A stretch of DNA of 62,859 nucleotides, filler included, from Dicyema japonicum (GCA_011109175.1; 6 parts of 6 records of this genome joined end to end with filler, not necessarily neighbours in it), one strand, 5' to 3'. Shown: positions 860 through 20,489, counted from the whole stretch's first letter. The notes: generated by a model from the sequence alone, not told the origin. Numbers and translations: made by a program.

Positions 860-2460
860 TACTGCATTTCTTAGTACCTCCACATCCTCATACACAAAAT
901 CGATGTCATCAGCATATATTAATTCCACAAAATGATCATTTAGTGACCCAATTCTTTTCTAACGTCCCTCAACGCAGCTTCCACATAGATTGCAAAGAGA
1001 ACTGGCTAAGCGAGTCCCTTTGCGGAATACCAATCCCGGTCGTGAATTTTTCCTAATAGTCCTCCCCCACTTTCACTATGAGGCTCGTGTCAGCCAGCAA
1101 AAAACGCACAATCCTCAAACAGTCCTCATCAATTATGTTTTGAGAACTTGCAGTAGTTTATCTCGGCAGACACAGTCGAATGCTTTCGATAAGTCGACTC
1201 CCAGAATATACATTGTTTTTCTGTACTTCTGACATATTTCCGTAAGCCACCGATGACTCCATACTATATCAGCGGTCGATCTCCTGGTCTGAATCTGCTT
1301 TGACTTGGTGACAAGTATTGGTCAACTGAATTTGATATTCGATTCAATTTGTAATCGACAATGTTTTTTGCAAAGTGCTCAAAAGCACGATCGACCGGAG
1401 ATTTTTAATTGGATCTGCAGTTTGCCATGTTTTTGTAAAGGAAGTAGAACTCCCATCGCGATGTCAATTAAACAATGAGTCCTGAATATCTCGTTGAATA
1501 TAAAAGTTATCTTTTCTGCTAGCTGGGTTTGTGCGTATTTTAACAACTCCCACAAATATTGTCATAGCCAGCTGCTCTGTTATTATTCAGGCGAAGGAGT
1601 GCTCCGCGAATCTCGGAATCCGTAAACACATTATTGGTTGAACGAGGCTGTCCTCGAATTGTGTGAGGGGTAAAATATTTCTCAATTGAACTGCTTGATA
1701 AAGTGTTGGGCTATAAGTCTACCAGAACGTTTGCCGTCCTATACAAAGTGACCGAACTCATCTTGAATTTTTAAATTGGTTTTATCTGACCCGCGTTGAG
1801 TAAACGCACATCCATAAACATTTTTACACCTGAATGTAATCTTACCACTTCCAATACTCGTTGGTCCAAAAAGTCCGACCATGATCGGAGCACATTCTAC
1901 TTAATTTCGTGTTGGATTGTATTTCGCAATTTTTTAATTCGGATTTTCGTTCAGGATCACAAGCTTCAATTTGAAGTCTTATATCTCGTTGACGGATAGA
2001 CAATTCATTGACGTCGAGTTATATGCTCCTTTATATTTTCCTTTTATAGTATTTTCGCGAATCCCAACTGTTTCTTCGGTAGCCGTCATTATGGCATCAG
2101 AGATTCTTTTCCACACGATGTGGGGTAGACTATCCATAGAAATATTGGATAGATTCTGATCCATTCGCTACTGGTATCTCGTGAGGAGTGCAGGATTATT
2201 TAGTAATTCTTCTCCCGCTATCATCTGTGTTTTTCTGGGACGTGCATAATTCGCATATAACACTCCATAAAACTTGCTAAGATTCAACCGACAGACAACG
2301 ATCTTGTGATCGCTATTTGTCAATGCTCCTCCATACAATCGAGAGTCCATTAATAATCTCTTGTGCGACTGCTTGCACAAATATAATCTATTTGATTGAA
2401 TATTTTTTGTTCCTTCCATTTTTGTTGTTCTACAACCTACCCAGGTGGTCTTGTGTCGGG
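860..2460 (-). mobile_element. Degenerate RTE-like LINE (APE end and RT)
   Basis: Minus-strand translation gives SDHKIVVCRL (end of APE), WKRISDAIMTATEETVG, ILGVDLSKAFDCVCRDKLL and GIGIPQRDSLS (RT motifs), with many stops and frameshifts. Confidence 0.75.
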
Positions 2461-2689
2461 CGGCGAGGTTGTCCTATTTTCTTTTGAAATACTCGAAAGT
2501 TCAAGCAGCCTCCCCAGCTTTCAACGCTGACTCTGAAAGTCTCGACTGGGAAAAGGTTTGATGTACGCCCCATTCCAAATCAAGCAGCGCTTCACAACCC
2601 CGTTGATGGCGGCATTGATGAGACGGCTAGAGAGCGGATGAAATCTCTTTAACATTACTATGGTTATTATGGGGGCGATAAATTATTGA

Positions 2690-2744
2690 CAGGGGCGAAA
2701 TTTTTTTCATACGGGGGATACGAAAGAAAAGTTAAGAAACACTG
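2690..2744 (+). mobile_element. Right end of a hAT (Charlie/Buster-type) element
   Basis: It ends aagttaagaaacactg, the reverse complement of a CAGTGTTTCTTAAC TIR, followed by gtctagat, which fits the NTCTAGAN target consensus. No left end was found. Confidence 0.45.
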
Positions 2745-3049
2745 GTCTAGATTGATGAGTAGTCCCCATGTATCGTTCAAGACAAAATTGCGGCTGTACA
2801 ACGCGTTTGTCCTACCTGTGCGTCAGTAAAAGTCGGGAACAGTAACAAAGAGAACAGTCACAAAGTTGTGTTTATCATAATAATAAAAAATGAATCCCTT
2901 AGGTTGGCAGGCTCAGTGTTCTAGATGAATCCTTAGCTGGACTCACAAAGAATTATGAATATGGCAATTTAAGTGCTATAATGCTAGATTTTTTTATCAT
3001 TTTAAACGAAATTTTATTAATCAAAAATATGTAAAGGTAATTCTTTAAT

Positions 3050-3440
3050 AACGCCCGTCTAACTCAATCTTCTCTTCTTGAGGCCAACTCCTATTGCCTT
3101 TATAGGCGTGTTCACGTCGCCGCATACCCCACATTCAGAGACTACTCTAGTTTAACACTCCATGCCGTCTTCCTCATCAACAGGCATCAATACTTTATGC
3201 TTCTCCTCAGCTTGCATACTCTCCAAAGTCTTCCGTAACACTAGCGTCTGTATATAAGCTTTGACCCTTCTCCACCTTGGGGGCATCCAGGTAGCCTTTG
3301 AAGAATATGGAGACAATTCCATCCAATGTGATGACCACAGGGATTATTTTCACTTTTGCACGATGGATAATCTCAAGTTCGTTCGCCAGTAGGTCATACT
3401 AGTGAAACTTTCTACCTCGTCCTGCTTGAGGCAGTTTTGT
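3050..3440 (-). mobile_element. R4-like REL retrotransposon, 3' fragment
   Basis: The minus strand encodes YDLLANELEIIHRAKVKIIPVVITLDGIVS..AYIQTLVLRKTLES, matching the C-terminus of the 10600-12006 element. Confidence 0.7.
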
Positions 3441-3559
3441 GAAGTGATCCCAATTTCAATATCATTTTATATTATTATGAAAATAAGATAAAAGTGATTT
3501 TTATCATTTTTATTAATGAAATGCCTGCACATTCTGTCACCATGACGGAAGTCCTGAAA

Positions 3560-4080
3560 CCAAAACACCCTGATCCCAATCCTCTGTTTTTTGAGTAGCC
3601 CGGACAAACTCGAAGAGAGAGTAAATCGTACCTATTTGAAGGCGACGTCCGAGCGACGTTGTGCGTCGTTGCCAGTAACGATGCTGTTCTGGCTGAAAAG
3701 TCTGAAGTGATCGAACAGCTCAGACGAAAACATCCATGTCCCCTGGCAGATTACCGCCAATTCGTGCTCCCAGGAAATGTGCCAAGTACGACCGTCACCG
3801 AAGGCAAGGTGCGGTGCGGCATTTCATCGTTTGTGGCGAGTAGCAGTGGAGGTCTCAATGGCTTGCGGTCAGGTCACATCAAGGATTTCACGGCGAGGGC
3901 TACTGCAGAAGCTGGTTGCAATCTTTTCAAATCAATTACAGAACTGGTTATGCGTATTTTGAACGGAAATATTCCTCCTCACGCATGGGAGCTTCTTTTC
4001 AGCGCACATCTACTGGCCTTCAAAAAAATTCGAAGGCTCCATCGCGATCGGCAACTTTTTCAGAAGGCTGACAGCTAAAA
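3560..4080 (+). mobile_element. CRE-clade retrotransposon, internal fragment
   Basis: High nucleotide similarity to 52080-52600. ORF 3659..4078 has SSGGLNGLRSGHIKD..LFSAHLLAFKK (pre-RT region). Confidence 0.85.
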
Positions 4081-8974: not shown

Positions 8975-10095
8975 CCAATGTAAAATTTTTAGATTTACAA
9001 TTTGACTCGAACAAATTTCAACCTTTATGAGGTCTACCTGGTTATTTGTAAACTTCTAGATTTAATATATAATACATTCGGTCATTTAACTTTAACAAGG
9101 GCCTGAATAGACACATCTTCGTCGTTTATATCACTGGTTCCCATATAAACACAACCTGAAGTCGATCTATTTATAGTAAAATACTGTTACACCGTATTAT
9201 AAACATATAATTAATGTCTTGGCGCATCGAAATAATTAATTTATTATTTTCACTATCAATTCCTAGCAAATTCACGTGATACTAACATATTTAATATACA
9301 CTCAAAATACTGATTTGAAAAAATGTTTTTTCGTAATAAGAAGACAACAAACATTCGGCCAAATTCCATTCGATTTTAATAGAGTCAATCCCATGAATAA
9401 TCTTTGAAATGCTAAAATCCCACTGCGCGGATTCTTAAATTGTGTAATAGACACTATTAGAAACTCACTTTAAAAGTATTCAAATTTTTATTTCCAATTT
9501 TAAATAAAGATTCAGTCGAAGTATTAAAAAATCCAATTTGACCAGTTTTTGAATGACTGTCCTACAGCATAGAAATAAAAATCACTTTTTTATCGATTCC
9601 AACTTTTGGAAATGAATTTTTAAATGACGTGAATTTTTTATTTTAAGAAATGCATTTTTAGATTCTTTGATAAAATTCATTTCTTAAAATAAAATAATGT
9701 ATAGATTTACTTTTCCTGAAATATTCAATTTGTTCAGTCGGTTCAGTATTATTTGTAATCTCATTCATTGGATTTTTAAAAAATTGCTTTTCTATTTTCC
9801 AAAAACACCTACATTATATTAAATTCATAGTTCAACTTAATCTTATTAAACCTAAAAGTAATTAAAAGCTTCAATCATATATTTTTACTTATTAGATTCG
9901 ACTTTTTTCATAATCAAATATTTAAAGTTTGACTAATCAAAAAAATTCCAATACTAATCACCGCAAAGATTTTCTATTTATAAATTGAATAATCAGATTA
10001 ATAACATAACGTAATAAACTTTAATCAGATTATGTGACAGGTAAGAGGCGGAACCAAAGAAAATTTTGTTGTTATTTATTATTATTAACAGCACT

Positions 10096-10300
10096 TTAAC
10101 AGAACCAAAGAACGTTATGTTGACTAAGGTCCCGTTTGTGCCAATGAAAGTACTCCTCTTTCTCGAGCAGTATGGAATTTGTTCTATTTCCGTTCGAGAC
10201 GAGTGGTGTCATCGCTGAGAAGGCATAGCCACTTTTAAAGGAGATCGGAAGCATGATTTTAAAACATACACGGGAGAGGAGGGAGAACATATTGCTTTTC
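10096..10300 (-). mobile_element. Possible hAT transposase C-terminal (dimerisation domain) remnant
   Basis: LLSRVCFKIMLPISFKSGYAFSAMT resembles the hAT C-terminal YPxLSxxAxKILxPFSTSYLCESxFSxM motif. Confidence 0.35.
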
Positions 10301-10474
10301 CAGAGGATCCGTGGCGATCAGGAGAGAAAACTATTTGGCTGTCCACGGCACGACCTATTCTCACTACTGGAAAGAAATCACTATTCAAGGTCATTGGTTA
10401 GTAAGTGCAGGTCATTATTAGAATAATCAAGTTCATAGTGTCAAATTTTTTAATAAAACATAGCTTATTATTTA

Positions 10475-10580
10475 TTTATTAACCCCCAGGTTGCACATCA
10501 TGGTGGCAAACCCAGCACAAACAACAATCACAACTAACTAATCGAATGAAAAGACTGTAGGAAGGAATTGTTTGTTTGTG
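10475..10580 (-). mobile_element. 3' tail of an I-group LINE
   Basis: The minus strand ends gggggttaataaataaata. Its acaactaactaatc segment recurs at 46313-46380. Confidence 0.4.
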
Positions 10581-10599
10581 CCGAACAATTTTTTGGTTT

Positions 10600-12006
10600 A
10601 TACTTAATTACACAATTAGTTTTAACTTATGCACGGAACTTATTTTATGCTTGAACGAGTACGCGATTTCACTGCTATCGAATTCGAGCCGAGTGAGCAC
10701 GATGAAATGGACCTTATTGTCCGAAGAGTACTCCGAGAGAATCACGTCCACGTGTTGGCAAGCAATAAGGAGAGATTATACTTGTCTCGCGGACAGCTAG
10801 GACGTGGACTGAGTAACATCGTACACTTAAGTGAGCGAATTCTGACTAAGATGCACGACACCTTGTGGAGTGGGTCAAATGTATCCCAAAGGAAGGCTGC
10901 CATCCTTGCTGTTGAAAAAGCGCGTGGTACACACCTAGGGACCATACAATGCTATGTGTCGGCTAAGTATGGTTTAGGTGCTACCCAAGTTAATGTGAAG
11001 GAGTTGATCAAAGTTCAAAGGGAATCACTAATTAAAAAGATCAACTTAAAAGTCCTTCACAAGACTCTCTTTAGCAGCCTGGACAACCCGCACATTGACG
11101 TATCGTCGTCATCAACGTGGCTGAAGTATGGGAATAACTCTCCCCGATCAGAAGGGTTATTCTCATACTTGCAGGATAGAATTTTTTCAATGGTCAACGG
11201 AGACAGTGTAACCACTGTAAAAGAAGGCAATGACCGTTGACCATTAGCCACGAAGTGCGGGAGTATGCTTTACCATGATTACACATGGAGGCATAACGAG
11301 GTGGTGAGGTCCCTCCATCTTCTGCTCTGCAATAAGTATGGCTTGAGGCGGTCCAGAAAGTTGCGAACCCATCGAGTTCAATCGGTGTGTGAGAACTCGA
11401 AGGTGTGCATTAAGGTGGATACCCCAATACGCACCTCGATTGTTGTCCAGCACAACAGACCCGATATTGTGGTCCACGATAAGATCACCGGGGAGATTGT
11501 TATCGTGGAGGTGGGCATCACGTGCCTAGATCGTTTGCAGACAGTGGAAGTGGAGAAGAGGAGGAAGTACGACCTTCTTGCAAACGAGTTAGGACTGATG
11601 CACCAGTGTAAAGTCCATGTCATTCCGTGTGTGATGACATGGGATGGACTGGTCACCAAATACCACAAGGGGTACTTAAAACAGTTGGGTGTAGATAAGT
11701 CTCTACAGGCTTATATGCAGTCAACTGTTCTTAAGAGGACTCTGGAGAGTATCTCGTTTGATGCTCGCCGATCCAGTCCTTTCCTGACATTTAGTCAGCG
11801 AGAGGCGCTGGACTGCACCTTCTCGGAGGTCTACAGAGCCAGAGAAGAGGAGGAAGAAGGAGGAGGTGCGTGGAGTGCCATCCTCTGTTCACTTCGAAGG
11901 CTCAGGACTTAGTTAGGCCATTAATTAGTTAATTATTTTCTTTTTTAACTTAATTGATTTCTCTTTCTTTAATTAATATATCGTTGTGATCATTAAAAAA
12001 AAAAAA
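10600..12006 (+). mobile_element. R4/Dong-like non-LTR retrotransposon, 5'-truncated (RT C-terminus, CCHC, restriction-like endonuclease)
   Basis: ORFs 10629..11240 and 11265..11912. Motifs: frameshifted C-x2-C..H..C, RHNEVV, NRPDIVV, EVGITC, EKRRKYDLLANEL. Poly-A at 11995-12006. Confidence 0.9.
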
Positions 12007-12034
12007 TGTTTTAACTTTAATATATTTTTTCAAA

Positions 12035-12064
12035 ATTCCTCGGGACCACGGTTGAGAACCGCTG
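12035..12064 (+). mobile_element. Right end of a hAT non-autonomous element
   Basis: gggaccacggttgagaaccgctg is a typical hAT/Charlie 3' terminus, followed by ctccagaa. Confidence 0.4.
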
Positions 12065-12618
12065 CTCCAGAATCTCAATTCTAGATTCTACTTCGCACAG
12101 TAGATTTACATCTGCATTTATAAATGCGCAAACAATTTATTTTTAAATTTAATGTCGCATTTATCGCTTATATTTGATAGAAAGATTATTTGCAGGTTGA
12201 TTAATGGTACTTAGCTTTTCCAAATTATTTTTTAGAACTTGTTCTTGTTAAAAGAATATTTTAAAATGAATTTAAAATACAGGTTTATCATTCCAGACCA
12301 TTCTCATAATAATTTGGGTCTCTTCTGTTCATTTAAATGAATAATATACCCTAATAATATAAATAATTGTAAATAATGCTGGAGGAATTCCATAATTAGT
12401 TCTAACCATAATCAAACCGCACAATTCATCAAAAGAAATGTGGTTAATTTGAATTAAAAGAAGTAATTAAATAATCACGTTGATGAGAAAGAAAACACAT
12501 AATCCAGATGATATAAAGTTTCCCGAAGTATTCGACATTCTCAGAGAAACCAACGTATAAGGCATATTTACTGTTACAAAAGAGAAGAAAATCAAAATAT
12601 TTAGTAAAAAAGTCACAT

Positions 12619-13686
12619 TCAACTTTTCTTACGCTGAGTAAGGACTACCACCGCCACTATAATTCCAATAGCGAGCAGTAAAATGACGATGCAAATAATC
12701 TTTTTCTGAGGAATTAATGAAGAAAAGAAACCCTTCGAGCACTTATTTGAAAATGCGACTGCTTGCTTAGTATTTTCCTTGGCGGTTGCAACATAGTTGA
12801 CAGTTGCATCCAAGTGGTGGCTAATTAAATCGATCACTTCGCCCTACTCGTAAAAACTCGCCAATAAAACCTGGTCCTCAATTAGCTGAGCAATGTCGGA
12901 GAAAAGCACAGCCATTTCATTTATGCTCTTTTCTAATCGGAGAATCTCATTCTGACGGGCTATCACAGAATTGAGGTATATTTGGTCTCTGTCCATTACA
13001 ATCCCCTGAGAGAAGAGCATTGGACTGCCCGACTGGATCATTTCTTCGAGTACTTCCTCGCTTACAGTTTTCCCGGCTATGTTTATTATACAGGACACAC
13101 TTATTTGAAGTTGTCGTTGGATCTGCTTTTTGCACTTGTCACGATACTCAACCTGCGCCGCGTTATACGAGTTCATCAAATCAAGGAAGTGGTTGGACGT
13201 GGAGAAATGCTACTTCGCTGTAGGGAAACACCAACTTGAGTCTTCTTAATGCGAAAGTTGGTCGAAGTAGGATTCTTCGACTCTTCTTCCTGCACTTGCG
13301 CAGACATGGCTAAAATAGTCAATATTCACTACTGTTAAGACTGTTCTTGACTTTATTGGCTATGCATTTTACTTCGGTCATCATTTCCTCTAGTCTGGGC
13401 GCGCTTTCTTTCCAAATTAATCAACCTCGGAAACCTCCATCCTTTTCACTCGAGGTTAATATCTCTTTATGAAACTTTTAATTTTCTCAATGGAAGCTTC
13501 CATCCTGTCCAGCAGATCTCGACATGTCTTCAGCTTGAGACATAATATGTTGTAATCAAACCTCTGCAAAAAATTCTTTCATTTCCGGAGTTGTCTCTGG
13601 TTCTGCCGCTTGCATGAATGGATTTTTAGATTCCTGCGATAAATTTTAACAAATACATTCAAGTCGTGAAGTCTATCTCTCCCCAT
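12619..13686 (-). CDS. STX1: Syntaxin-1-like plasma-membrane Qa-SNARE, 9 exons, about 287 aa
   Basis: Spliced model: MGRDRLHDLN|ESK..MKEFFAE|LKTCRDLLDRM..ANKVKNSLN|T..FRIKKTQ|HF..YRDKCKKQIQRQLQI|TGKTVSEEVLEEM..IEDQ|GEVIDLI..ARR|KKIICIVILLLAIGIIVAVVVL (TM anchor). GT-AG introns: 13634-13656, 13534-13561, 13408-13434, 13310-13332, 13210-13235, 13077-13100, 12844-12870, 12706-12731. They match syntaxin-1 intron positions and phases as I recall them. The model needs two single-base homopolymer corrections (13476-13479 and 12750-12753). Confidence 0.92.
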
Positions 13687-14334
13687 TCAAATTGGATCAC
13701 CTCAATGTAAATTTAAATACTATTTTTATTTTACAAAAATTTAGTTATATTTTGTTATCATTAGAGTATAGATTATAATTATTTTTAAAGAAAATTAAAT
13801 AATACATTTAATTTACAAAAATATTTGTAATTATTTTTGTTGAAGTCAGTCGCTATCTGTTTTCTCGGGTTAACCAACTAAAAGTGATTTTAATACCCGG
13901 GTATGAAAATGCTCCTCTGAAAAAAATTGGATATTCTTGGAAGTTTTTTTTTGGCACTGAAGATCAATCATAAATACTCAAACTAATTTTTTGGAAGAAG
14001 CTTAAACTCCTCGATAAAGAAATACCTTAACATAGAAAAGCCTTAACACAGAAGACCAAACTACGTACAGTCTTCCCTCTATTGCTCGCCATTTTTGGGA
14101 CCAAGCCAAAATTGGCGACTAAGAGAATTTGGCGAGTAAGAGAAATAATCAATATCCTATCTTCTATCAAAAAGAAAATTTTCTATAATTTTTAATTTGA
14201 GTGATTCTAAACATTTAAATAAATATCTGAAACATTTGTTGAAAAAAACCAAGATTTTAAGTAAAGTAATCATTAATAGTTTTTTTTGACTGATCTTTTC
14301 TCTATATTTTTTGCATTTTTATTAAACTTTCAAG

Positions 14335-16986
14335 AGTCCATAATTAAAATATCATCTGCGTAAATGATCATCTCCATGTTAGGGAGATCCACTTGAGGAA
14401 TGTCGCACATCACACAATTAAATAAAAGTGGACTGATGACAGATCCCTGTGGAACTCCTCTCTTAAGCAGAATTCTCTTCGACAATTGGTTTCCAACCCG
14501 TACAAACGATTCTCTTCTCGATAGGAAACTCCTTATCCAAACCAAGGCTGTCTTTCCAACGTTAAAATTGTATAAAGTTCGTAATAGCCCGGCATGCCAG
14601 ACGCTATCAAATGCTTTTGATATGTCTAGACAAGCAGCCGTAAGATATTCTTTTTTCCTTTGTGCTGTAAATATAGCCTCCTTTAGCAGGGAAAAGCAAT
14701 TTCCAGTGCCCCGGTTACGCCGAAATCCCAATTGTTCTTGCAAGAGATACTGTTTATCCTCAATATAATTTGATAGTCTTTTAAAGACAATTCTTTCCAT
14801 GATTTTTGAGATAGAACATATGAGGCTGATTGGCCTGTAATTTGCAGGATCAGAACTCGGTTTTCCTTTTTTCGGAATCATGCGAACAATTGTCCTCTTC
14901 CATGTTTGAGGCACGTGTCCGATCATCCACGAAGAGTTAAATAACTGCCATAGTCCGCATAATAAATGGCATTTCCGCCTTTTTGAAGACAATCATCGGC
15001 ATGTAGTCCCAACCAGGGGATTTATTTTTGCATCCGCGTATCGCTAACTTGACTTCTTCATAGAAATAGCTCCACATAATGGCCCCTCCGTAACCGATGG
15101 CAGATCCCAAAACACGTACAATTTTGTACAGCCTGTGGGATCATCGACAACGGATCCACTTCTTGATCCTAGCTAGCTGCTCCTTTAACTTCTCAGGTAT
15201 TTCCTCCTTGGAATCAGATTGCCTTCAGTGGACTTGAGTTTTATCTCCCCACCCTTTTTATCAGAACTCATCTTCGAGAAAATTTTCCAAAAGTTCGGAT
15301 TTTTAGGGGAGAGTTTAGAGCATTCTTTTTTCCAGCTCTCCTCTACTATATTCTTAGATAATTCCTCTGCCAAATTATTAATCGATTTGATTCTTTGTTT
15401 GAGGAAGATCGCGTCTTGCGGATCCCAACACCGCTTTAATTTACTCTCCAAGTTTCTTTTTTCGCAAAGTAGTTCAGATTGCTCTTCATTTATCAATCGG
15501 TTTTTGTACGAGAAGAGAAACCTCTTTTTTCCATAGTCCTCCAAGTAACTTAGAATAATATTTCTCATTCTCTCATCCAAATGATTATCTCGTCGAGATT
15601 TAGTATTTTAGATTCTTGAGTATTTGCCAATTTTATAGACATATAAAAATTGAAGTGATCCCAATCAATGTTGCTTATATTATAACCAAGAAATACATCC
15701 TCAGTGGGAACTGTTTCCGTTCGTAATTTCATCGTTTGCGGAAGATGGTCACTCCCCACATCATTTTCAACATAAGGCCGGTCACACAGACCACTTAAGG
15801 CAGGGGTGGCCAACCAGTCGATCGCGATCGACTGGTCGATCTCGGCGCATTTCTTGGTCGATCGCCTTCGAATTAATTTTTTATTTATTTCGCATTTTGA
15901 TCGCGGTGCATTTCTTGGTCGATCGATCGCCTTCGATGTATAAATTGCTAATTATATTTTTGTATTTAGAAAGATTTTTGACGTTTAACCAAGAAAAATT
16001 GAAATAGAAATTATAAATCTAAAAAATGACCTCATTTTAAAATCGCGGCAACGCACACTGCGTCCTTGCCGCTGGGCATGTAAATTAATTCACGTTTTTC
16101 TTTTATTTGTTTCATCTTTTAAAATCATATTCAAATGTCAACATGTGGAGATTTTATGTCTCTAGAAAAATATCCAATTTTGATTGATTTGTATCAACGA
16201 ATTCTTTCATGCTTTGGAAGCACATATTTATTCTGAAAATCATTTTCAAGAATGAAAATGATAAAATTTCAATACAGGACCCGTTTAACGGATGACCATC
16301 TTGGGGATTGCATGAGAATAGCAATAAGCTCATACGAGCCAGAATTCTAAATAATCGCAAGATAATTACAATGCCAAAAATCCCATTAACTTTTAATTAT
16401 AAAATAAAAATTTTGTTATTAAAATATATAAGTCGATCGCCAAAAAATCGCAATATAAAAAGTAGCTCGCCGGTGAAAAAGGTTGGCCACCCCTGGCTTA
16501 GGCATTTGCAACAATAAACAATCCTAATCGATCACCACTTTGCTGCTGAAAGTGGTTGAGCTCTTCAGACGTAAAGACTTGAAAGTTTGAAGATTTTTTA
16601 ATCTCGAATAAACAATTTCCGTCCTGATTTGACTTTACACACCCATATGCAGTATGCTTAGCGTTCAAGTCTCCAACGAGAATTGGATGTTCACATCCTT
16701 CCATAAAATTTTTGACAATCGACGAATAGTCTTTCAACCTTTTGGAGTAAATACCCCCAACGGTTATCCATCCAATAGAAGTTTTTAGATCAATTGATGC
16801 TAATTCACATACATTCTGTTCAATTATTTTTGGATTCCGAGTATCAATAGACTTTTTGTAAAATATTGATGTTCCTGTGCCAGCGTTAGCACCAGGATAC
16901 CAAGGAATATCAATTGAGCTGTATCCAGGAATAGTGATACTTCCAACCTTCTTCATTTTCGTCTCGTTGATGATAAATACATCCAT
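14335..16986 (-). pseudogene. LINE ORF2 (APE endonuclease and reverse transcriptase), disrupted
   Basis: DVFIINETK, VGDLNAKH, GSDHLP (APE); NYRPISL, LDISKAFDSVWH, GVPQGSVISPLLFN, YADD (RT). Disrupted by frameshifts and a MITE. Confidence 0.92.
15801..16495. mobile_element. Non-autonomous hAT element (MITE), 695 bp
   Basis: Perfect 15-bp TIRs CAGGGGTGGCCAACC / GGTTGGCCACCCCTG. Degenerate 8-bp TSD acttaagg (15793-15800) versus gctta-gg (16496-16502). GTCGATCG subterminal repeats. Removing it restores the ORF2 frame (ANALSGLC). Confidence 0.92.
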
Positions 16987-17044
16987 CTGAACTGTGCTGA
17001 TAAGAGCTATCAGCTCTGCTGCCCGCTTTCGAAGAGAACGGGCA

Positions 17045-18016
17045 TTAACCAGGGTAATCCTGGTTACATTTGTTTATTTGGTGGCTGCTTCCCTCTTTTA
17101 GGAGAGCCACCAAACCGAGTAAAAGCTTGGCATCCTTTTTAGTTCTGGTCACATCCTTAATAGACCTTTCGAGCTCACTGATTAAATCAGCTCGAGGTCG
17201 ACACGTCATTGACCCATCTCCTGAAGTCGACAAAGTCTGCACAGCCGAGTGAGATATAGTCGTTTCCTCGGTCTGTATTCCAATTTCTGCTGTTTTCCTA
17301 ACTCTTGGAACGTTCCATCCTTCTCATGGCTTCACGGCTGAATTTTCCATGTCTGTTTGGTCGGATTTGTCATTCTCCGAAGCTTCTTTTAACAGTTTCT
17401 GCGCCAATATTTTCTTATTCTTTAGCTTTGAAGCTTCTTTAGCTTTTTCACAGCCCCGATAATTTGCCAAGTGGTCCGGAGAACCGCAGTTGACACATTT
17501 TTTCATGTCAGCTTCCTTGCAATCTGTTCCAGCATGTGTGCCCGAGCAGAATAGACATTTCTCCTGATTTTTACAGAAGCGTGCTATGTGCCCAAACCCT
17601 TGGCATCGATAGCACTGAACTTCCGGTTTTCTGTACCACTCGACCTTTACATTTGAAAAGCCGATCTTTAGCCCCAATCGTACAAGCGATTGAGCTTCTC
17701 CATGATCAAAAGTTACCATTTTAATGATAGGCAGTCTCACTCCCCTTCTTTCAAAGCGTTCGAGAGTCGTTTTTCCTTTCACTTTGCCCTTCAGGAAGTC
17801 TTCGAGTTCCTCAATTTCGATCCAAGTTGGGACATTCTTTAGAATTATTGCCACTGGCCCAAATTTCTTATTTTGGAGAGAATGGCCTTCCTCTCCAAAA
17901 GGTTTGCTTTCTTCTAATTCATTTCGAAAGGTTTCCACATCTTTTTCGATTTTGAAATTCAGTAGAAACTCTCCTGACTGTCGGCGAGAAACTCGTGCCT
18001 TTTTGATCGATTTCAT
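17045..18016 (-). CDS. LINE ORF1 (gag-like nucleic-acid-binding protein), probably 5'-truncated and frameshifted
   Basis: CYRCQGFGHIARFC, CLFCSGTHAGTDC and CVNCGSPDHLANYRGC knuckles after an RRM-like IILKNVP region. The frame is open up to the inversion junction. Confidence 0.85.
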
Positions 18017-18027
18017 GTTGCATAACG

Positions 18028-18566
18028 TATTTTAATTATGGACTCTTCTATGAGCAAGTCAATATCATGGAAAAGAACTCATTGTCATATTGAAAAAATT
18101 GCCAAGTGGTGCAAGGATAAAGGCTTGTCCTTATCCTATGAAAAAAGTACTGTTTTGCTGGATTGGCAAGAACCGGAGGAAACATGGCCTTTGTATTAAC
18201 ACTGGAGTTATAAAATCCATGGAAAATCTAAAATATCTCGGAGTAGTAGTGGATGCATCTGGATCATTTAAAACTCATATAATCAACAGAAAGAACAAAG
18301 CTACTGCAATGCTGAAAGCTCTCACACGATTTCGGTTGAAACCGGAAACGTTCCTATACGTATACTCTGCGTGTATAGAGCCTTTTCTGGTCTATGGTTT
18401 TCAAGGATGGTTCGAAAGCTGTGAAGGAAAGAAACACGTTCAACTTTTGGATAAAACGCGGAGATATGCCATTAAATTGGCGCATGGCTTGGATCTAAAA
18501 TCCAAACTAACCCAGAGCTGGAGGGATCTGTACGATCCATTGAAAAATGTTGCACCACTTAAATAA
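18028..18566 (+). pseudogene. 3' part of LINE ORF2 (RT thumb), forward arm
   Basis: LIMDSSM..KWCKDKGLSLSYEK, one frameshift, then LKYLGVVVD..LYVYSACIEPFLVYG. Confidence 0.85.
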
Positions 18567-20045
18567 ATAGTGGTGCAAGGGGTCATCATTTCGTAGAAGG
18601 GACATCTGGTGTCCCATTACAGTAGACCCCAATCAGCAAACAAACTCGGTTCTCTCTTCCCCTTGGTCGCGTTCGGCTCTTCTCCTTCTCCTCCTCTCTT
18701 AATTTAGTGACGAGTTTGTTATATGGAAAATAAAAAATTCTATTCTATTATTCTATTCTTTAACTTTCAAGCATATTCACATTAAAATGATCGTCATGGG
18801 AAAAATATTTTTGAGGTCCGAAACACTTTTTATCGCGTCTCGATGTGTAATACATTTGTTTCTTTCACAATTGAACTGTCTAAATTGTCATTTTCATCGT
18901 TATTGTTTTGTAGAAATTCATGAAGTTCGTCATTTTCAGAGTACGTAAAGTCTATAAACTCCTCTTCTTTTATGGATCTGAGATCATTAATTTATCTAAT
19001 AATTTGTTCAAAATTTTTTATTTTATGGTCTCCCTTAATAGGTTCTTCAATGCTTTTTTCCCATTTGGCGTGCTGAAAACATTTTGATATTGTATCCACC
19101 GACACATTTTTCCAGGCAAGATAAGAAAATAAGACTCCATCTTTAGCGTTAATTTTTTATAGCATTCAATATTTGCTTCACTTAATTTATTTTTTATTAT
19201 ATGTTTAAATTTAAATTTGTTGAAATGGATTTGAATGATCTAATGATTCCTTGATCCATCGGTTGAAGCACAGTAGTCGTGTTTTTTGGCAAATATAAAA
19301 CTTCTATCATACTTAATTCGATTGCTATTTTATGAGAAGGACAATGGTCTACAACCAAAAGTATCTTTCTTTGTTTTGTTTGAGAGTTTTATTCCAATTA
19401 TACAACCATTCATTAAATATTTCTGTTCATCCAAGCCTTTGAAGAATTGTGGTATTGTAAATACTCATCAACGTTCAAGTTTTTGAAACACCTTGGTTTC
19501 TTAACTTTCCGATCATCAATGGGGTTCTTTTATCAGATCCAGTCATATTTGCCCAAAGCATTAATGAAAATCTGAAATTGGCTAAAAAATGTTAAACCTA
19601 TCTTTAAGTAATTTTTGTCCTGGTCGGTGTTTCCTGCAGACACTTTTTGATGGAATGTTCTTGTAAAAACGCCTGTTTCGTCGGCATTATAAACATTTTC
19701 GGACCGTATTCATTTATTTTTGAAGATAATTTTTTTTAAGTCTTCGATTCCGTCTTTGAACTCATCCACAGTATATCCCAATTCACCATGAAAAATTCTA
19801 GTTTTATATTGTGCCTTTTTTAACTTTTCAAGCCATCCTTTACTGGATTTAAATTCAGAGACCGTTTAACGCAGCAAATTCAGCTGCTTTTGAGTTTCGA
19901 AAAACGAGAACTTCTCCCATAAATTGGATTAATTCCAAGAATCTTCTGTTTGTTCAATTTAAGATCGTTAATTGCACGTCTCAAAATTGATTTTTTGAAA
20001 CGCGACGAAAAAATTTCTGAAACACGTCTTAAACTCAGAGAAGAG

Positions 20046-20489
20046 TTATTTATTTATTTACCCCCCGGGCCCTTCAATTGAAGGAAACCGGTGGCTAACA
20101 AGAACGTTAATGCCAATGTCGGACGCTCCCAGAGATCCCGATCGTGATCCGGTGTTCCGAGGAAGCAGAAGGCGGGCCTGGACAGGAGAAAAGGTCACTG
20201 AGGGAATAGGAAGGGATGGATTCAGCAAGACCGATTTTTTGACGATAATTGTGTAGGCCAATATGATGGCCACAGCGGAGACGAGCCAAGTTCACTCGGG
20301 CTTCTCTCGAGAGGGAGGATTCGACGTTGTTAATTGGCGGCGGAAGGCGTCCCAGAAGCTTGTTTATTCCAAGACATCTGATTGCCCTCGTAGCTACCAA
20401 GTCGTGAATTCTCTTCTGGTTTATGTCCGGAGGAAATGGTATAAGCATGCGGATTTTGTCCGCGAGGGTCGGAATTATTCTCCTGTTAT
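20046..20489 (-). mobile_element. I/Ingi/Nimb-like LINE 3' end, cut by a contig join
   Basis: LSREARVNLARLRCGHH..Y..KIG..DLFSCP is a typical I-group C-terminus. The tail is ggggggtaaataaataaataa. Confidence 0.75.

Follow-up and report, generated by a model that had tools for sequence, protein, structure and literature searches.

An octopus Jockey-like LINE with an inverted 5' arm, a probable case of twin priming outside L1

In a stretch of 62,859 nucleotides joined from six parts of the Dicyema japonicum assembly GCA_011109175.1 (hereafter the window, within which all coordinates are counted), one long interspersed nuclear element (LINE) is divided into two arms that lie on opposite strands. 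We hold it to be likely, with good confidence, that this copy represents one retrotransposition event of a Jockey-like octopus LINE that was resolved by twin priming, a reading that draws on the sequence of the locus and of its relatives. The LINE-bearing piece of the window spans 8975-20489. Within it, a single pair of target-site duplications flanks two opposite-strand fragments of one element, of which the 5' part is inverted and the 3' part is direct and carries a tail. Both arms together amount to 4,437 bp at one target site and are arranged as follows (ORF, open reading frame; AP, apurinic/apyrimidinic; RT, reverse transcriptase; UTR, untranslated region):

14325-14334, no strand: left copy of the target-site duplication AACTTTCAAG, 10 bp; the AAG that closes it (3 nt) is the complement of CUU in the element RNA, at the putative internal priming site
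14335-18027, minus strand: inverted 5' arm with ORF1, AP endonuclease and RT up to YADDILIMDS; 3,693 bp today
14335-14351, minus strand: inverted-arm copy of a 17-nt internal duplication; 20 nt with the AAG microhomology at 14332-14334
18028-18761, plus strand: direct 3' arm, in which the remaining RT sequence is followed by the 3' UTR and an (ATTCT)n tail, delimited by translation and blastn
18028-18044, plus strand: direct-arm copy of the 17-nt internal duplication, TATTTTAATTATGGACT; 20 nt with CTT at 18045-18047
18762-18771, no strand: right copy of the target-site duplication AACTTTCAAG, 10 bp

The duplication that a first-pass annotation of this DNA had read at both edges, 14325-14334 and 18762-18771, is present there, and so is the 20-mer it had reported from both arms: exactly two places of the window hold TATTTTAATTATGGACTCTT, 14332-14351 on the minus strand and 18028-18047 on the plus strand, and 100 shuffles gave no match to it even when up to three mismatches were allowed. 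The two arms overlap by 17 nt, and a further 3 nt (AAG) are common to the element and to the duplication; the match of AAG to the end of the left duplication, also pointed out beforehand, is genuine, AAG being part of the 20-mer. Reading frames and Pfam likewise bear out the proposed arm layout, in which the RT stops at YADDILIMDS on the minus strand and resumes on the plus strand. The minus-strand frame ends in ...MEMIIYADDILIMDS at 14333, its stop codon TGA falling in the duplication, and the plus-strand frame opens with RILIMDSSMSKSISWK at 18026. The outer end of the inverted arm is an internal position of the element (RT YADDILIMDS) and has no tail, and for this reason the inverted arm cannot be an independent target-primed insertion. 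At its other end, the arm begins 11 nt upstream of the first ORF1 ATG of the window and is not full length. The microhomology at the inversion junction between the two arms measures 0-1 nt.

The boundaries of the insertion can be read from empty sites. A contig of organism A (run X1) aligns with the window up to 14331 (..AACTTTC) and then continues with TAGCATATTCACATCAAAATTATCGTCATG, which agrees in 27 of 30 positions with the window sequence starting at 18769; this empty site holds a single copy of the 10-mer (AACTTTCTAG), with the right flank directly after it. In organism B (runs X3, X4 and X5), empty-site joints from 14271 to 18762 resume exactly at the right duplication. The empty site thus places both arms between one duplication pair, at one target site, and supports a single insertion event. 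The flanks (13988-14334, and 18772 onward to 19400) belong to a high-copy repeat whose depth lies in the thousands in both organisms. The empty sites may therefore be paralogous copies of this host repeat, yet they define the insertion boundaries equally well.

By all appearances, the LINE family is normally collinear. The ORF1 fragment of the window has a match, at 91% identity, in an uncharacterized protein of Octopus sinensis (P0001, LOC115228143), and the window is accordingly assigned to an octopus. P0001 is encoded at O. sinensis VCDQ01005136.1:43468-64247 (hereafter L001), where a collinear copy (copy 1) occupies 10001-13805. Element positions are L001 coordinates minus 10000, and natural copies were compared pairwise. 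Copy 1 is continuous across the position at which the element of the window is broken (...TACGCAGATGATATTTAATTATGGATTTCTCTATGAGC...). In blastn against L001, window positions 14337-15802 match 13105-11667 (89%), 16500-18039 match 11671-10131 (92%) and 18031-18749 match 13094-13806 at 84%. Mapped on copy 1, the inverted arm corresponds to element nt ~143 to ~3107 and the direct arm starts from nt ~3091. The inverted arm is without ~142 nt of the 5' end, a region that is 99% identical between both L001 copies. The collinear state is also met in organism A, in which a contig (run X1) joins 14337 to 18043 on opposite strands, with 15 nt fitting on either side. The first-pass annotation had raised the possibility that the 20-mer is a native inverted repeat of the element. 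No native inverted repeat was found at the break site in the collinear L001 copy, and the 5' region of that copy differs from the 20-mer. A native 5' inverted repeat had been hinted at by the blastn alignment, which runs 12 nt past the junction to 18039, and was rejected on the ground that inspection gives only 8 matches in 12, AT-rich, to the true 5' region (ATATTTTTAACA against ATAATTAAAATA).

Directly behind copy 1, L001 holds a second copy of the family that is itself 5'-inverted. Its parts, in L001 coordinates, are:

13816-13824 and 16765-16773: target-site duplication TTTTAAACG, 9 bp
13826-15746, inverted: inverted arm, equal to copy 1 from 11927 to 10001 at 98%
between the arms: 23 nt of filler or 5' extension
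15770-16762, direct: direct arm, equal to copy 1 12812-13805 at 96.8%

This copy 2 has an internal deletion of ~884 nt. Because its breakpoints differ from those of the window, it represents an independent event, and the comparison of the two loci suggests that 5' inversion recurs in this LINE family. L001 was chosen by its ORF1 and not by inversion, and one of its two copies is inverted, a tiny sample. Copy 1 is flanked by TTTTAAACGTAG at 9966-9977 and 13816-13827, and the trailing TAG of this sequence consists of an additional T at 13825 followed by the opening two nt of copy 2's inverted arm. From this composition it follows that copy 1 inserted after copy 2, at the same bottom-strand nick site. 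In the interval 9966-16773 of L001, a collinear and a 5'-inverted LINE are thus framed by TTTTAAACG, present three times, and the nick site was apparently used twice. The readable top-strand cuts (..CAAG^CATATT in the window, ..AACG^CATTTT in L001) share G^CAT, which may be due to chance.

The inverted arm was shorter at insertion than it is today, as it contains a further mobile element, which is MITE-like (MITE, miniature inverted-repeat transposable element) and bounded by terminal inverted repeats (TIRs):

15798-16499, no strand: nested MITE-like element, ~702 bp, with 18-20-nt terminal inverted repeats ..AGGCAGGGGTGGCCAACC / GGTTGGCCACCCCTGGCT..; boundaries ambiguous by ~5 nt

The nested element is missing from L001 and from other family copies in all four read runs, which show the joint from 15797 to 16500; on this comparison it is, by every indication, a later insertion into the endonuclease region of the LINE. 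The inverted arm therefore measured ~2.99 kb at insertion, and not 3.7 kb, because ~702 bp belong to the later element. Of the earlier statement that a single event inverted about 3.7 kb, the single event is supported by the empty site, and the length has to be corrected to ~2.99 kb without the nested element. Read depth over the nested element is very high (15,000-20,000 in X3), and its target duplication is possibly TTA, its boundaries being ambiguous.

For the ~20% of human L1 insertions with an inverted 5' part, the textbook account is twin priming, and Ostertag and Kazazian reportedly described such 5' inversions of mammalian L1 in 2001. In the layout known from L1, two inverted fragments of one element lie between duplications, the overhanging top strand pairs within the RNA and microhomologies are found at the 5' junction (PMC2912911, PMC2837659). 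Applied to the window, the left edge of AACTTTCAAG would be the point at which the element endonuclease nicks the bottom strand, and the 3' end of that strand would prime reverse transcription at the (AUUCU)n tail, giving the direct arm as a first cDNA. The top strand would be cut 10 nt downstream before completion of this cDNA, and its freed 3' end (...CAAG-3') could pair via AAG with CUU in the RT-coding part of the same or a sister RNA. A second cDNA would be primed there and extend for ~3 kb toward the 5' end of the RNA, halting ~142 nt short of it. Meanwhile the first cDNA would pass the internal priming site by 17 nt and so create the 17-nt internal duplication, after which the cDNA ends would be connected at a junction with 0-1 nt of microhomology and the remaining gaps closed. 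The expected product is a duplication, an inverted 5' arm, a direct 3' arm, a tail and a second duplication, in this order; the ORF1 nonsense mutation, the ORF2 frameshifts and the nested 702-bp TIR element would have been acquired later. We infer this order of events from its fit to the L1 twin-priming layout. Microhomology at the 5' junction is typical of 5'-inverted L1 (PMC2912911). Among 1,703 5'-inverted L1 insertions, internal duplications were found in 17%, with a median of 22 bp, and have been explained by the tail-primed cDNA passing the internal primer site (bioRxiv 10.1101/2024.08.27.596794); the 17 nt of the window agree with this size. The twin-priming reading had already been put forward in the first-pass annotation, and the empty site, the collinear copies, the lack of a native inverted repeat at the break in the collinear copy and the second inverted copy now lend it support.

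Several points weigh against this reading. None of the contigs listed spans the 14334/14335 or the 18027/18028 junction of the source organism; for a 62-nt query with its centre at 18027/18028, which had only two sampled words, no run was listed, an outcome that carries no weight either way. A microhomology of 3 nt is expected by chance once in 64 cases. The inverted arm measures 3.0 kb and the direct arm 0.73 kb, whereas the direct arm of human L1 averages 2.6x longer (bioRxiv 10.1101/2024.08.27.596794). Moreover, the insertion event is old and beyond observation, and the family sample amounts to three copies.

An alternative is that a collinear, slightly 5'-truncated copy was inserted first and that its 5' 3 kb were flipped later by two breaks and end joining, by a staggered break or by a process of the fork stalling and template switching (FoSTeS) or microhomology-mediated break-induced replication (MMBIR) type, with duplication of 17 nt at one breakpoint. 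Staggered-break inversions can leave short inverted duplications at their ends, and the copy is old enough to have gathered other lesions (frameshifts and the nested TIR element). Nonetheless, we regard this account as unlikely: one of the breaks would have had to hit the boundary of element and duplication to within 0-3 nt, and to do so twice, in the window and in L001, where copy 2 shows the same class of structure and is again bounded exactly by its own duplication. As for an inversion by homologous recombination, it is excluded because the empty site is without the 17-mer and the collinear element is without an inverted repeat at that place.

It could also be that the locus is collinear in the animal and that the 3.7-kb segment was misoriented by the assembler. 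The junctions were not seen in independent reads, the element is high-copy, with a depth in the thousands, and repeats are the commonest place of assembly errors. A simple flip, however, does not make a second 17-mer, and a repeat of 20 nt is too short to mislead an assembler. Furthermore, the junctions lack the palindromes of a missed-adapter chimera, the left one coincides exactly with the end of the duplication, and L001 has the same architecture with other breakpoints. An assembly artefact therefore seems to us rather improbable.

A closer relative of the twin-priming reading would have the freed top-strand end primed internally on another RNA molecule from the same subfamily, and not on the one that is being copied from its tail. 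The resulting architecture would not differ, the 17-nt overlap would be easier to obtain if two polymerases copied different molecules, and for L1, twin and dual priming are inseparable from sequence data (PMC2837659). No feature here separates this variant from the single-RNA version, and the overlap carries the same subfamily variant, GGACT, in both arms, where the L001 copies have GGATT; we would give the involvement of a second RNA only a very slender chance. Finally, two independent insertions in opposite orientation at neighbouring sites, later trimmed by deletions, are scarcely credible even for a family that re-uses target sites (the two L001 copies share a bottom-strand nick site), since target-primed insertion cannot produce a minus arm without the 3' 0.7 kb and the tail, one duplication pair surrounds both arms at a precise empty site, chance trimming would not be expected to leave an exact 17-nt overlap at the same element position, and no tail remnant or second duplication pair was seen inside the structure.

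The coding content of the element is recognizable in both arms, of which the annotated parts are:

17327-18016, minus strand: ORF1 fragment, 230 aa from ATG, with a premature stop; Pfam zf-CCHC in 17327-18031 (minus strand)
16501-17073, minus strand: AP endonuclease, N-terminal part of ORF2; Pfam Exo_endo_phos 5.6e-08, Exo_endo_phos_2 1.9e-06
14333-14992, minus strand: RT fingers and palm to YADDILIMDS; Pfam RVT_1 2.1e-33, profile positions 1-159 of 205
18737-18761, plus strand: 3' tail, degenerate (ATTCT)n and not poly(A); Tandem Repeats Finder period 5, 5 copies; (ATTCT)~5 at 18737-18759

The ORF1 fragment holds the CCHC zinc knuckle CYRCQGFGHIARFC and two more, giving three C-X2-C-X4-H-X4-C motifs in 17327-18031 on the minus strand, and its premature stop corresponds to W in copy 2 of L001. 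The minus-strand RT segment terminates in ...NMEMIIYADDILIMDS. The direct arm can be translated from ILIMDSSMSK... to ...DPLKNVAPLK with one frameshift and a stop at 18564-18566, which places the end of ORF2 ~180 aa past YADD; a Pfam search of the direct-arm and C-terminal ORF2 pieces found neither RNase H nor any other domain. The 3' ends of the L001 copies are (TTCAA)n-like repeats. The lesions of the window copy comprise the ORF1 nonsense mutation, several ORF2 frameshifts and the nested 702-bp TIR element.

Contigs of 200-500 nt from the two small runs X4 and X5 match 14348-17908 with 0-2 differences, and the L001 copies differ by 8-11%. These near-identical contigs might stem either from a very young subfamily or from transcription of the locus. 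Read depth peaks at 16898-17091, reaching ~28,600 in X3 and 1,150-2,040 in X4/X5, with neighbouring bins at ~1,500-4,000; in X1 the depth is ~1,240 without a peak. This sub-segment at the ORF1/ORF2 boundary seems to be separately amplified in organism B.

To place the LINE in a clade, we considered its RT, its domain content and its tail. An AlphaFold 2 model of the RT piece (pLDDT 94.8), compared with Swiss-Prot by Foldseek, has BS, jockey and X-element at the top of the list (33-36% identity, TM 0.86, root-mean-square deviation ~2); the RTs of L1, Tx1 and R1 follow at 23-27% identity, L1 and Tx1 at ranks 7-10. Of 1.84 billion protein representatives, the closest in RT sequence reach only 40-45% identity and have an AP endonuclease and an RT, several of them with RNase H. 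A profile search of solved structures in the PDB was set aside as uninformative, L1 (~1e-34) and R2 (~1e-30) scoring alike. Exact-protein look-ups of the 220-aa RT ORF and the 230-aa ORF1 ORF of the window found no record, and neither the RT piece nor the C-terminal piece led to further octopus proteins in protein searches, the sole match being P0001, via ORF1. The tail is neither poly(A) nor A-rich and the RT is not closest to those of the L1 clade, both of which speak against membership of that clade. CCHC knuckles in ORF1, and an ORF2 composed of AP endonuclease and RT without RNase H, are traits of the Jockey superfamily, and the pentanucleotide tail, in place of poly(A), weighs against Jockey sensu stricto and not against the wider superfamily. 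A label of non-L1, Jockey-like appears reasonable on the strength of the CCHC ORF1, the missing RNase H, the pentanucleotide tail and the nearest RTs. The assignment to the non-L1, I/Jockey group in the first-pass annotation is reasonably supported by the same characters and by the Foldseek ranking. The Drosophila elements jockey (P21328), BS (Q95SX7) and X-element (Q9NBX4) resemble the LINE described here in their CCHC ORF1 and in an ORF2 with AP endonuclease and RT but no RNase H; these Jockey-clade elements differ from it in that the identity is only ~35% and in that it ends in a pentanucleotide tail and not in poly(A).

Left of 13988, the sequence is single-copy, with a depth of ~48 in X3 and 0 in X1. 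An ORF fragment at 12844-13176 on the minus strand corresponds to the C-terminal portion of the Pfam Syntaxin domain (1.2e-10), and a syntaxin gene probably contains or adjoins the LINE. Further upstream, 10629-11912 on the plus strand contains two ORFs of 203 and 215 aa without a Pfam match, with an acidic GAAGAGGAG repeat at 11843-11866.

Food for further comparison is offered by the few reports of 5' inversion in other LINEs. In a systematic comparison of LINE clades, inversions were almost confined to L1 in human cells, with a single 5'-inverted insert of Nimb-2_DR in chicken DT40 cells and no inversion for the L2-clade ZfL2-1, and were concluded to depend on the LINE species and on the host (PMC4245944). 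For 5' inversion its authors proposed a requirement for a long 3' overhang as well as for particular host factors (PMC4245944); the 9-12 bp duplications fit the idea of a long 3' overhang. In the searchable literature, 5' inversion outside L1 comes down to that one Nimb-2_DR insert in DT40 cells (PMC4245944), in agreement with the first-pass annotation, which knew of few such cases. Two natural cases in a Jockey-like LINE of a mollusc, with duplications of 9-10 bp, would widen the phylogenetic range of a known mechanism. We also entertain, tentatively and as a possibility we would not bet on, that 5' inversion by second-strand internal priming is a frequent and intrinsic outcome for this cephalopod Jockey-like family, because inversion affects two of the three copies, one of these having been found without selection for it. 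If this were true, an early cut of the top strand and internal priming would be general for AP-endonuclease LINEs with duplications of ~10 bp, and not a peculiarity of L1 in human cells, as had been concluded (PMC4245944). Standard repeat pipelines split such copies into two fragments on opposite strands, and the inversion rates of non-mammalian LINEs are probably under-counted.

The locus in the window shares with the products of mammalian L1 twin priming one duplication pair, a 5' arm in inverted and a tailed 3' arm in direct orientation, an outer end of the inverted arm that is internal to the element, and 5' truncation of that arm. It also shares with them a microhomology with the end of the duplication and a short internal duplication, of 17 nt here and of 22 bp as the L1 median. 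In contrast to L1, the LINE described here has a CCHC ORF1, an (ATTCT)n tail, an RT nearer to those of jockey, BS and X, and a cephalopod host; its inverted arm is 4x the direct arm, the reverse of the L1 average, and its duplication measures 10 bp, compared with an L1 peak near 15 bp. Closer in kind is the Nimb-2_DR insert (PMC4245944), which likewise comes from a non-L1 element with an AP endonuclease on the I/Jockey side and has duplications of ~12 bp, similar to the 9-12 bp found here. Nimb-2_DR differs in being one de novo event of a zebrafish element in heterologous cells, whereas here two fixed genomic copies are found in the native host.

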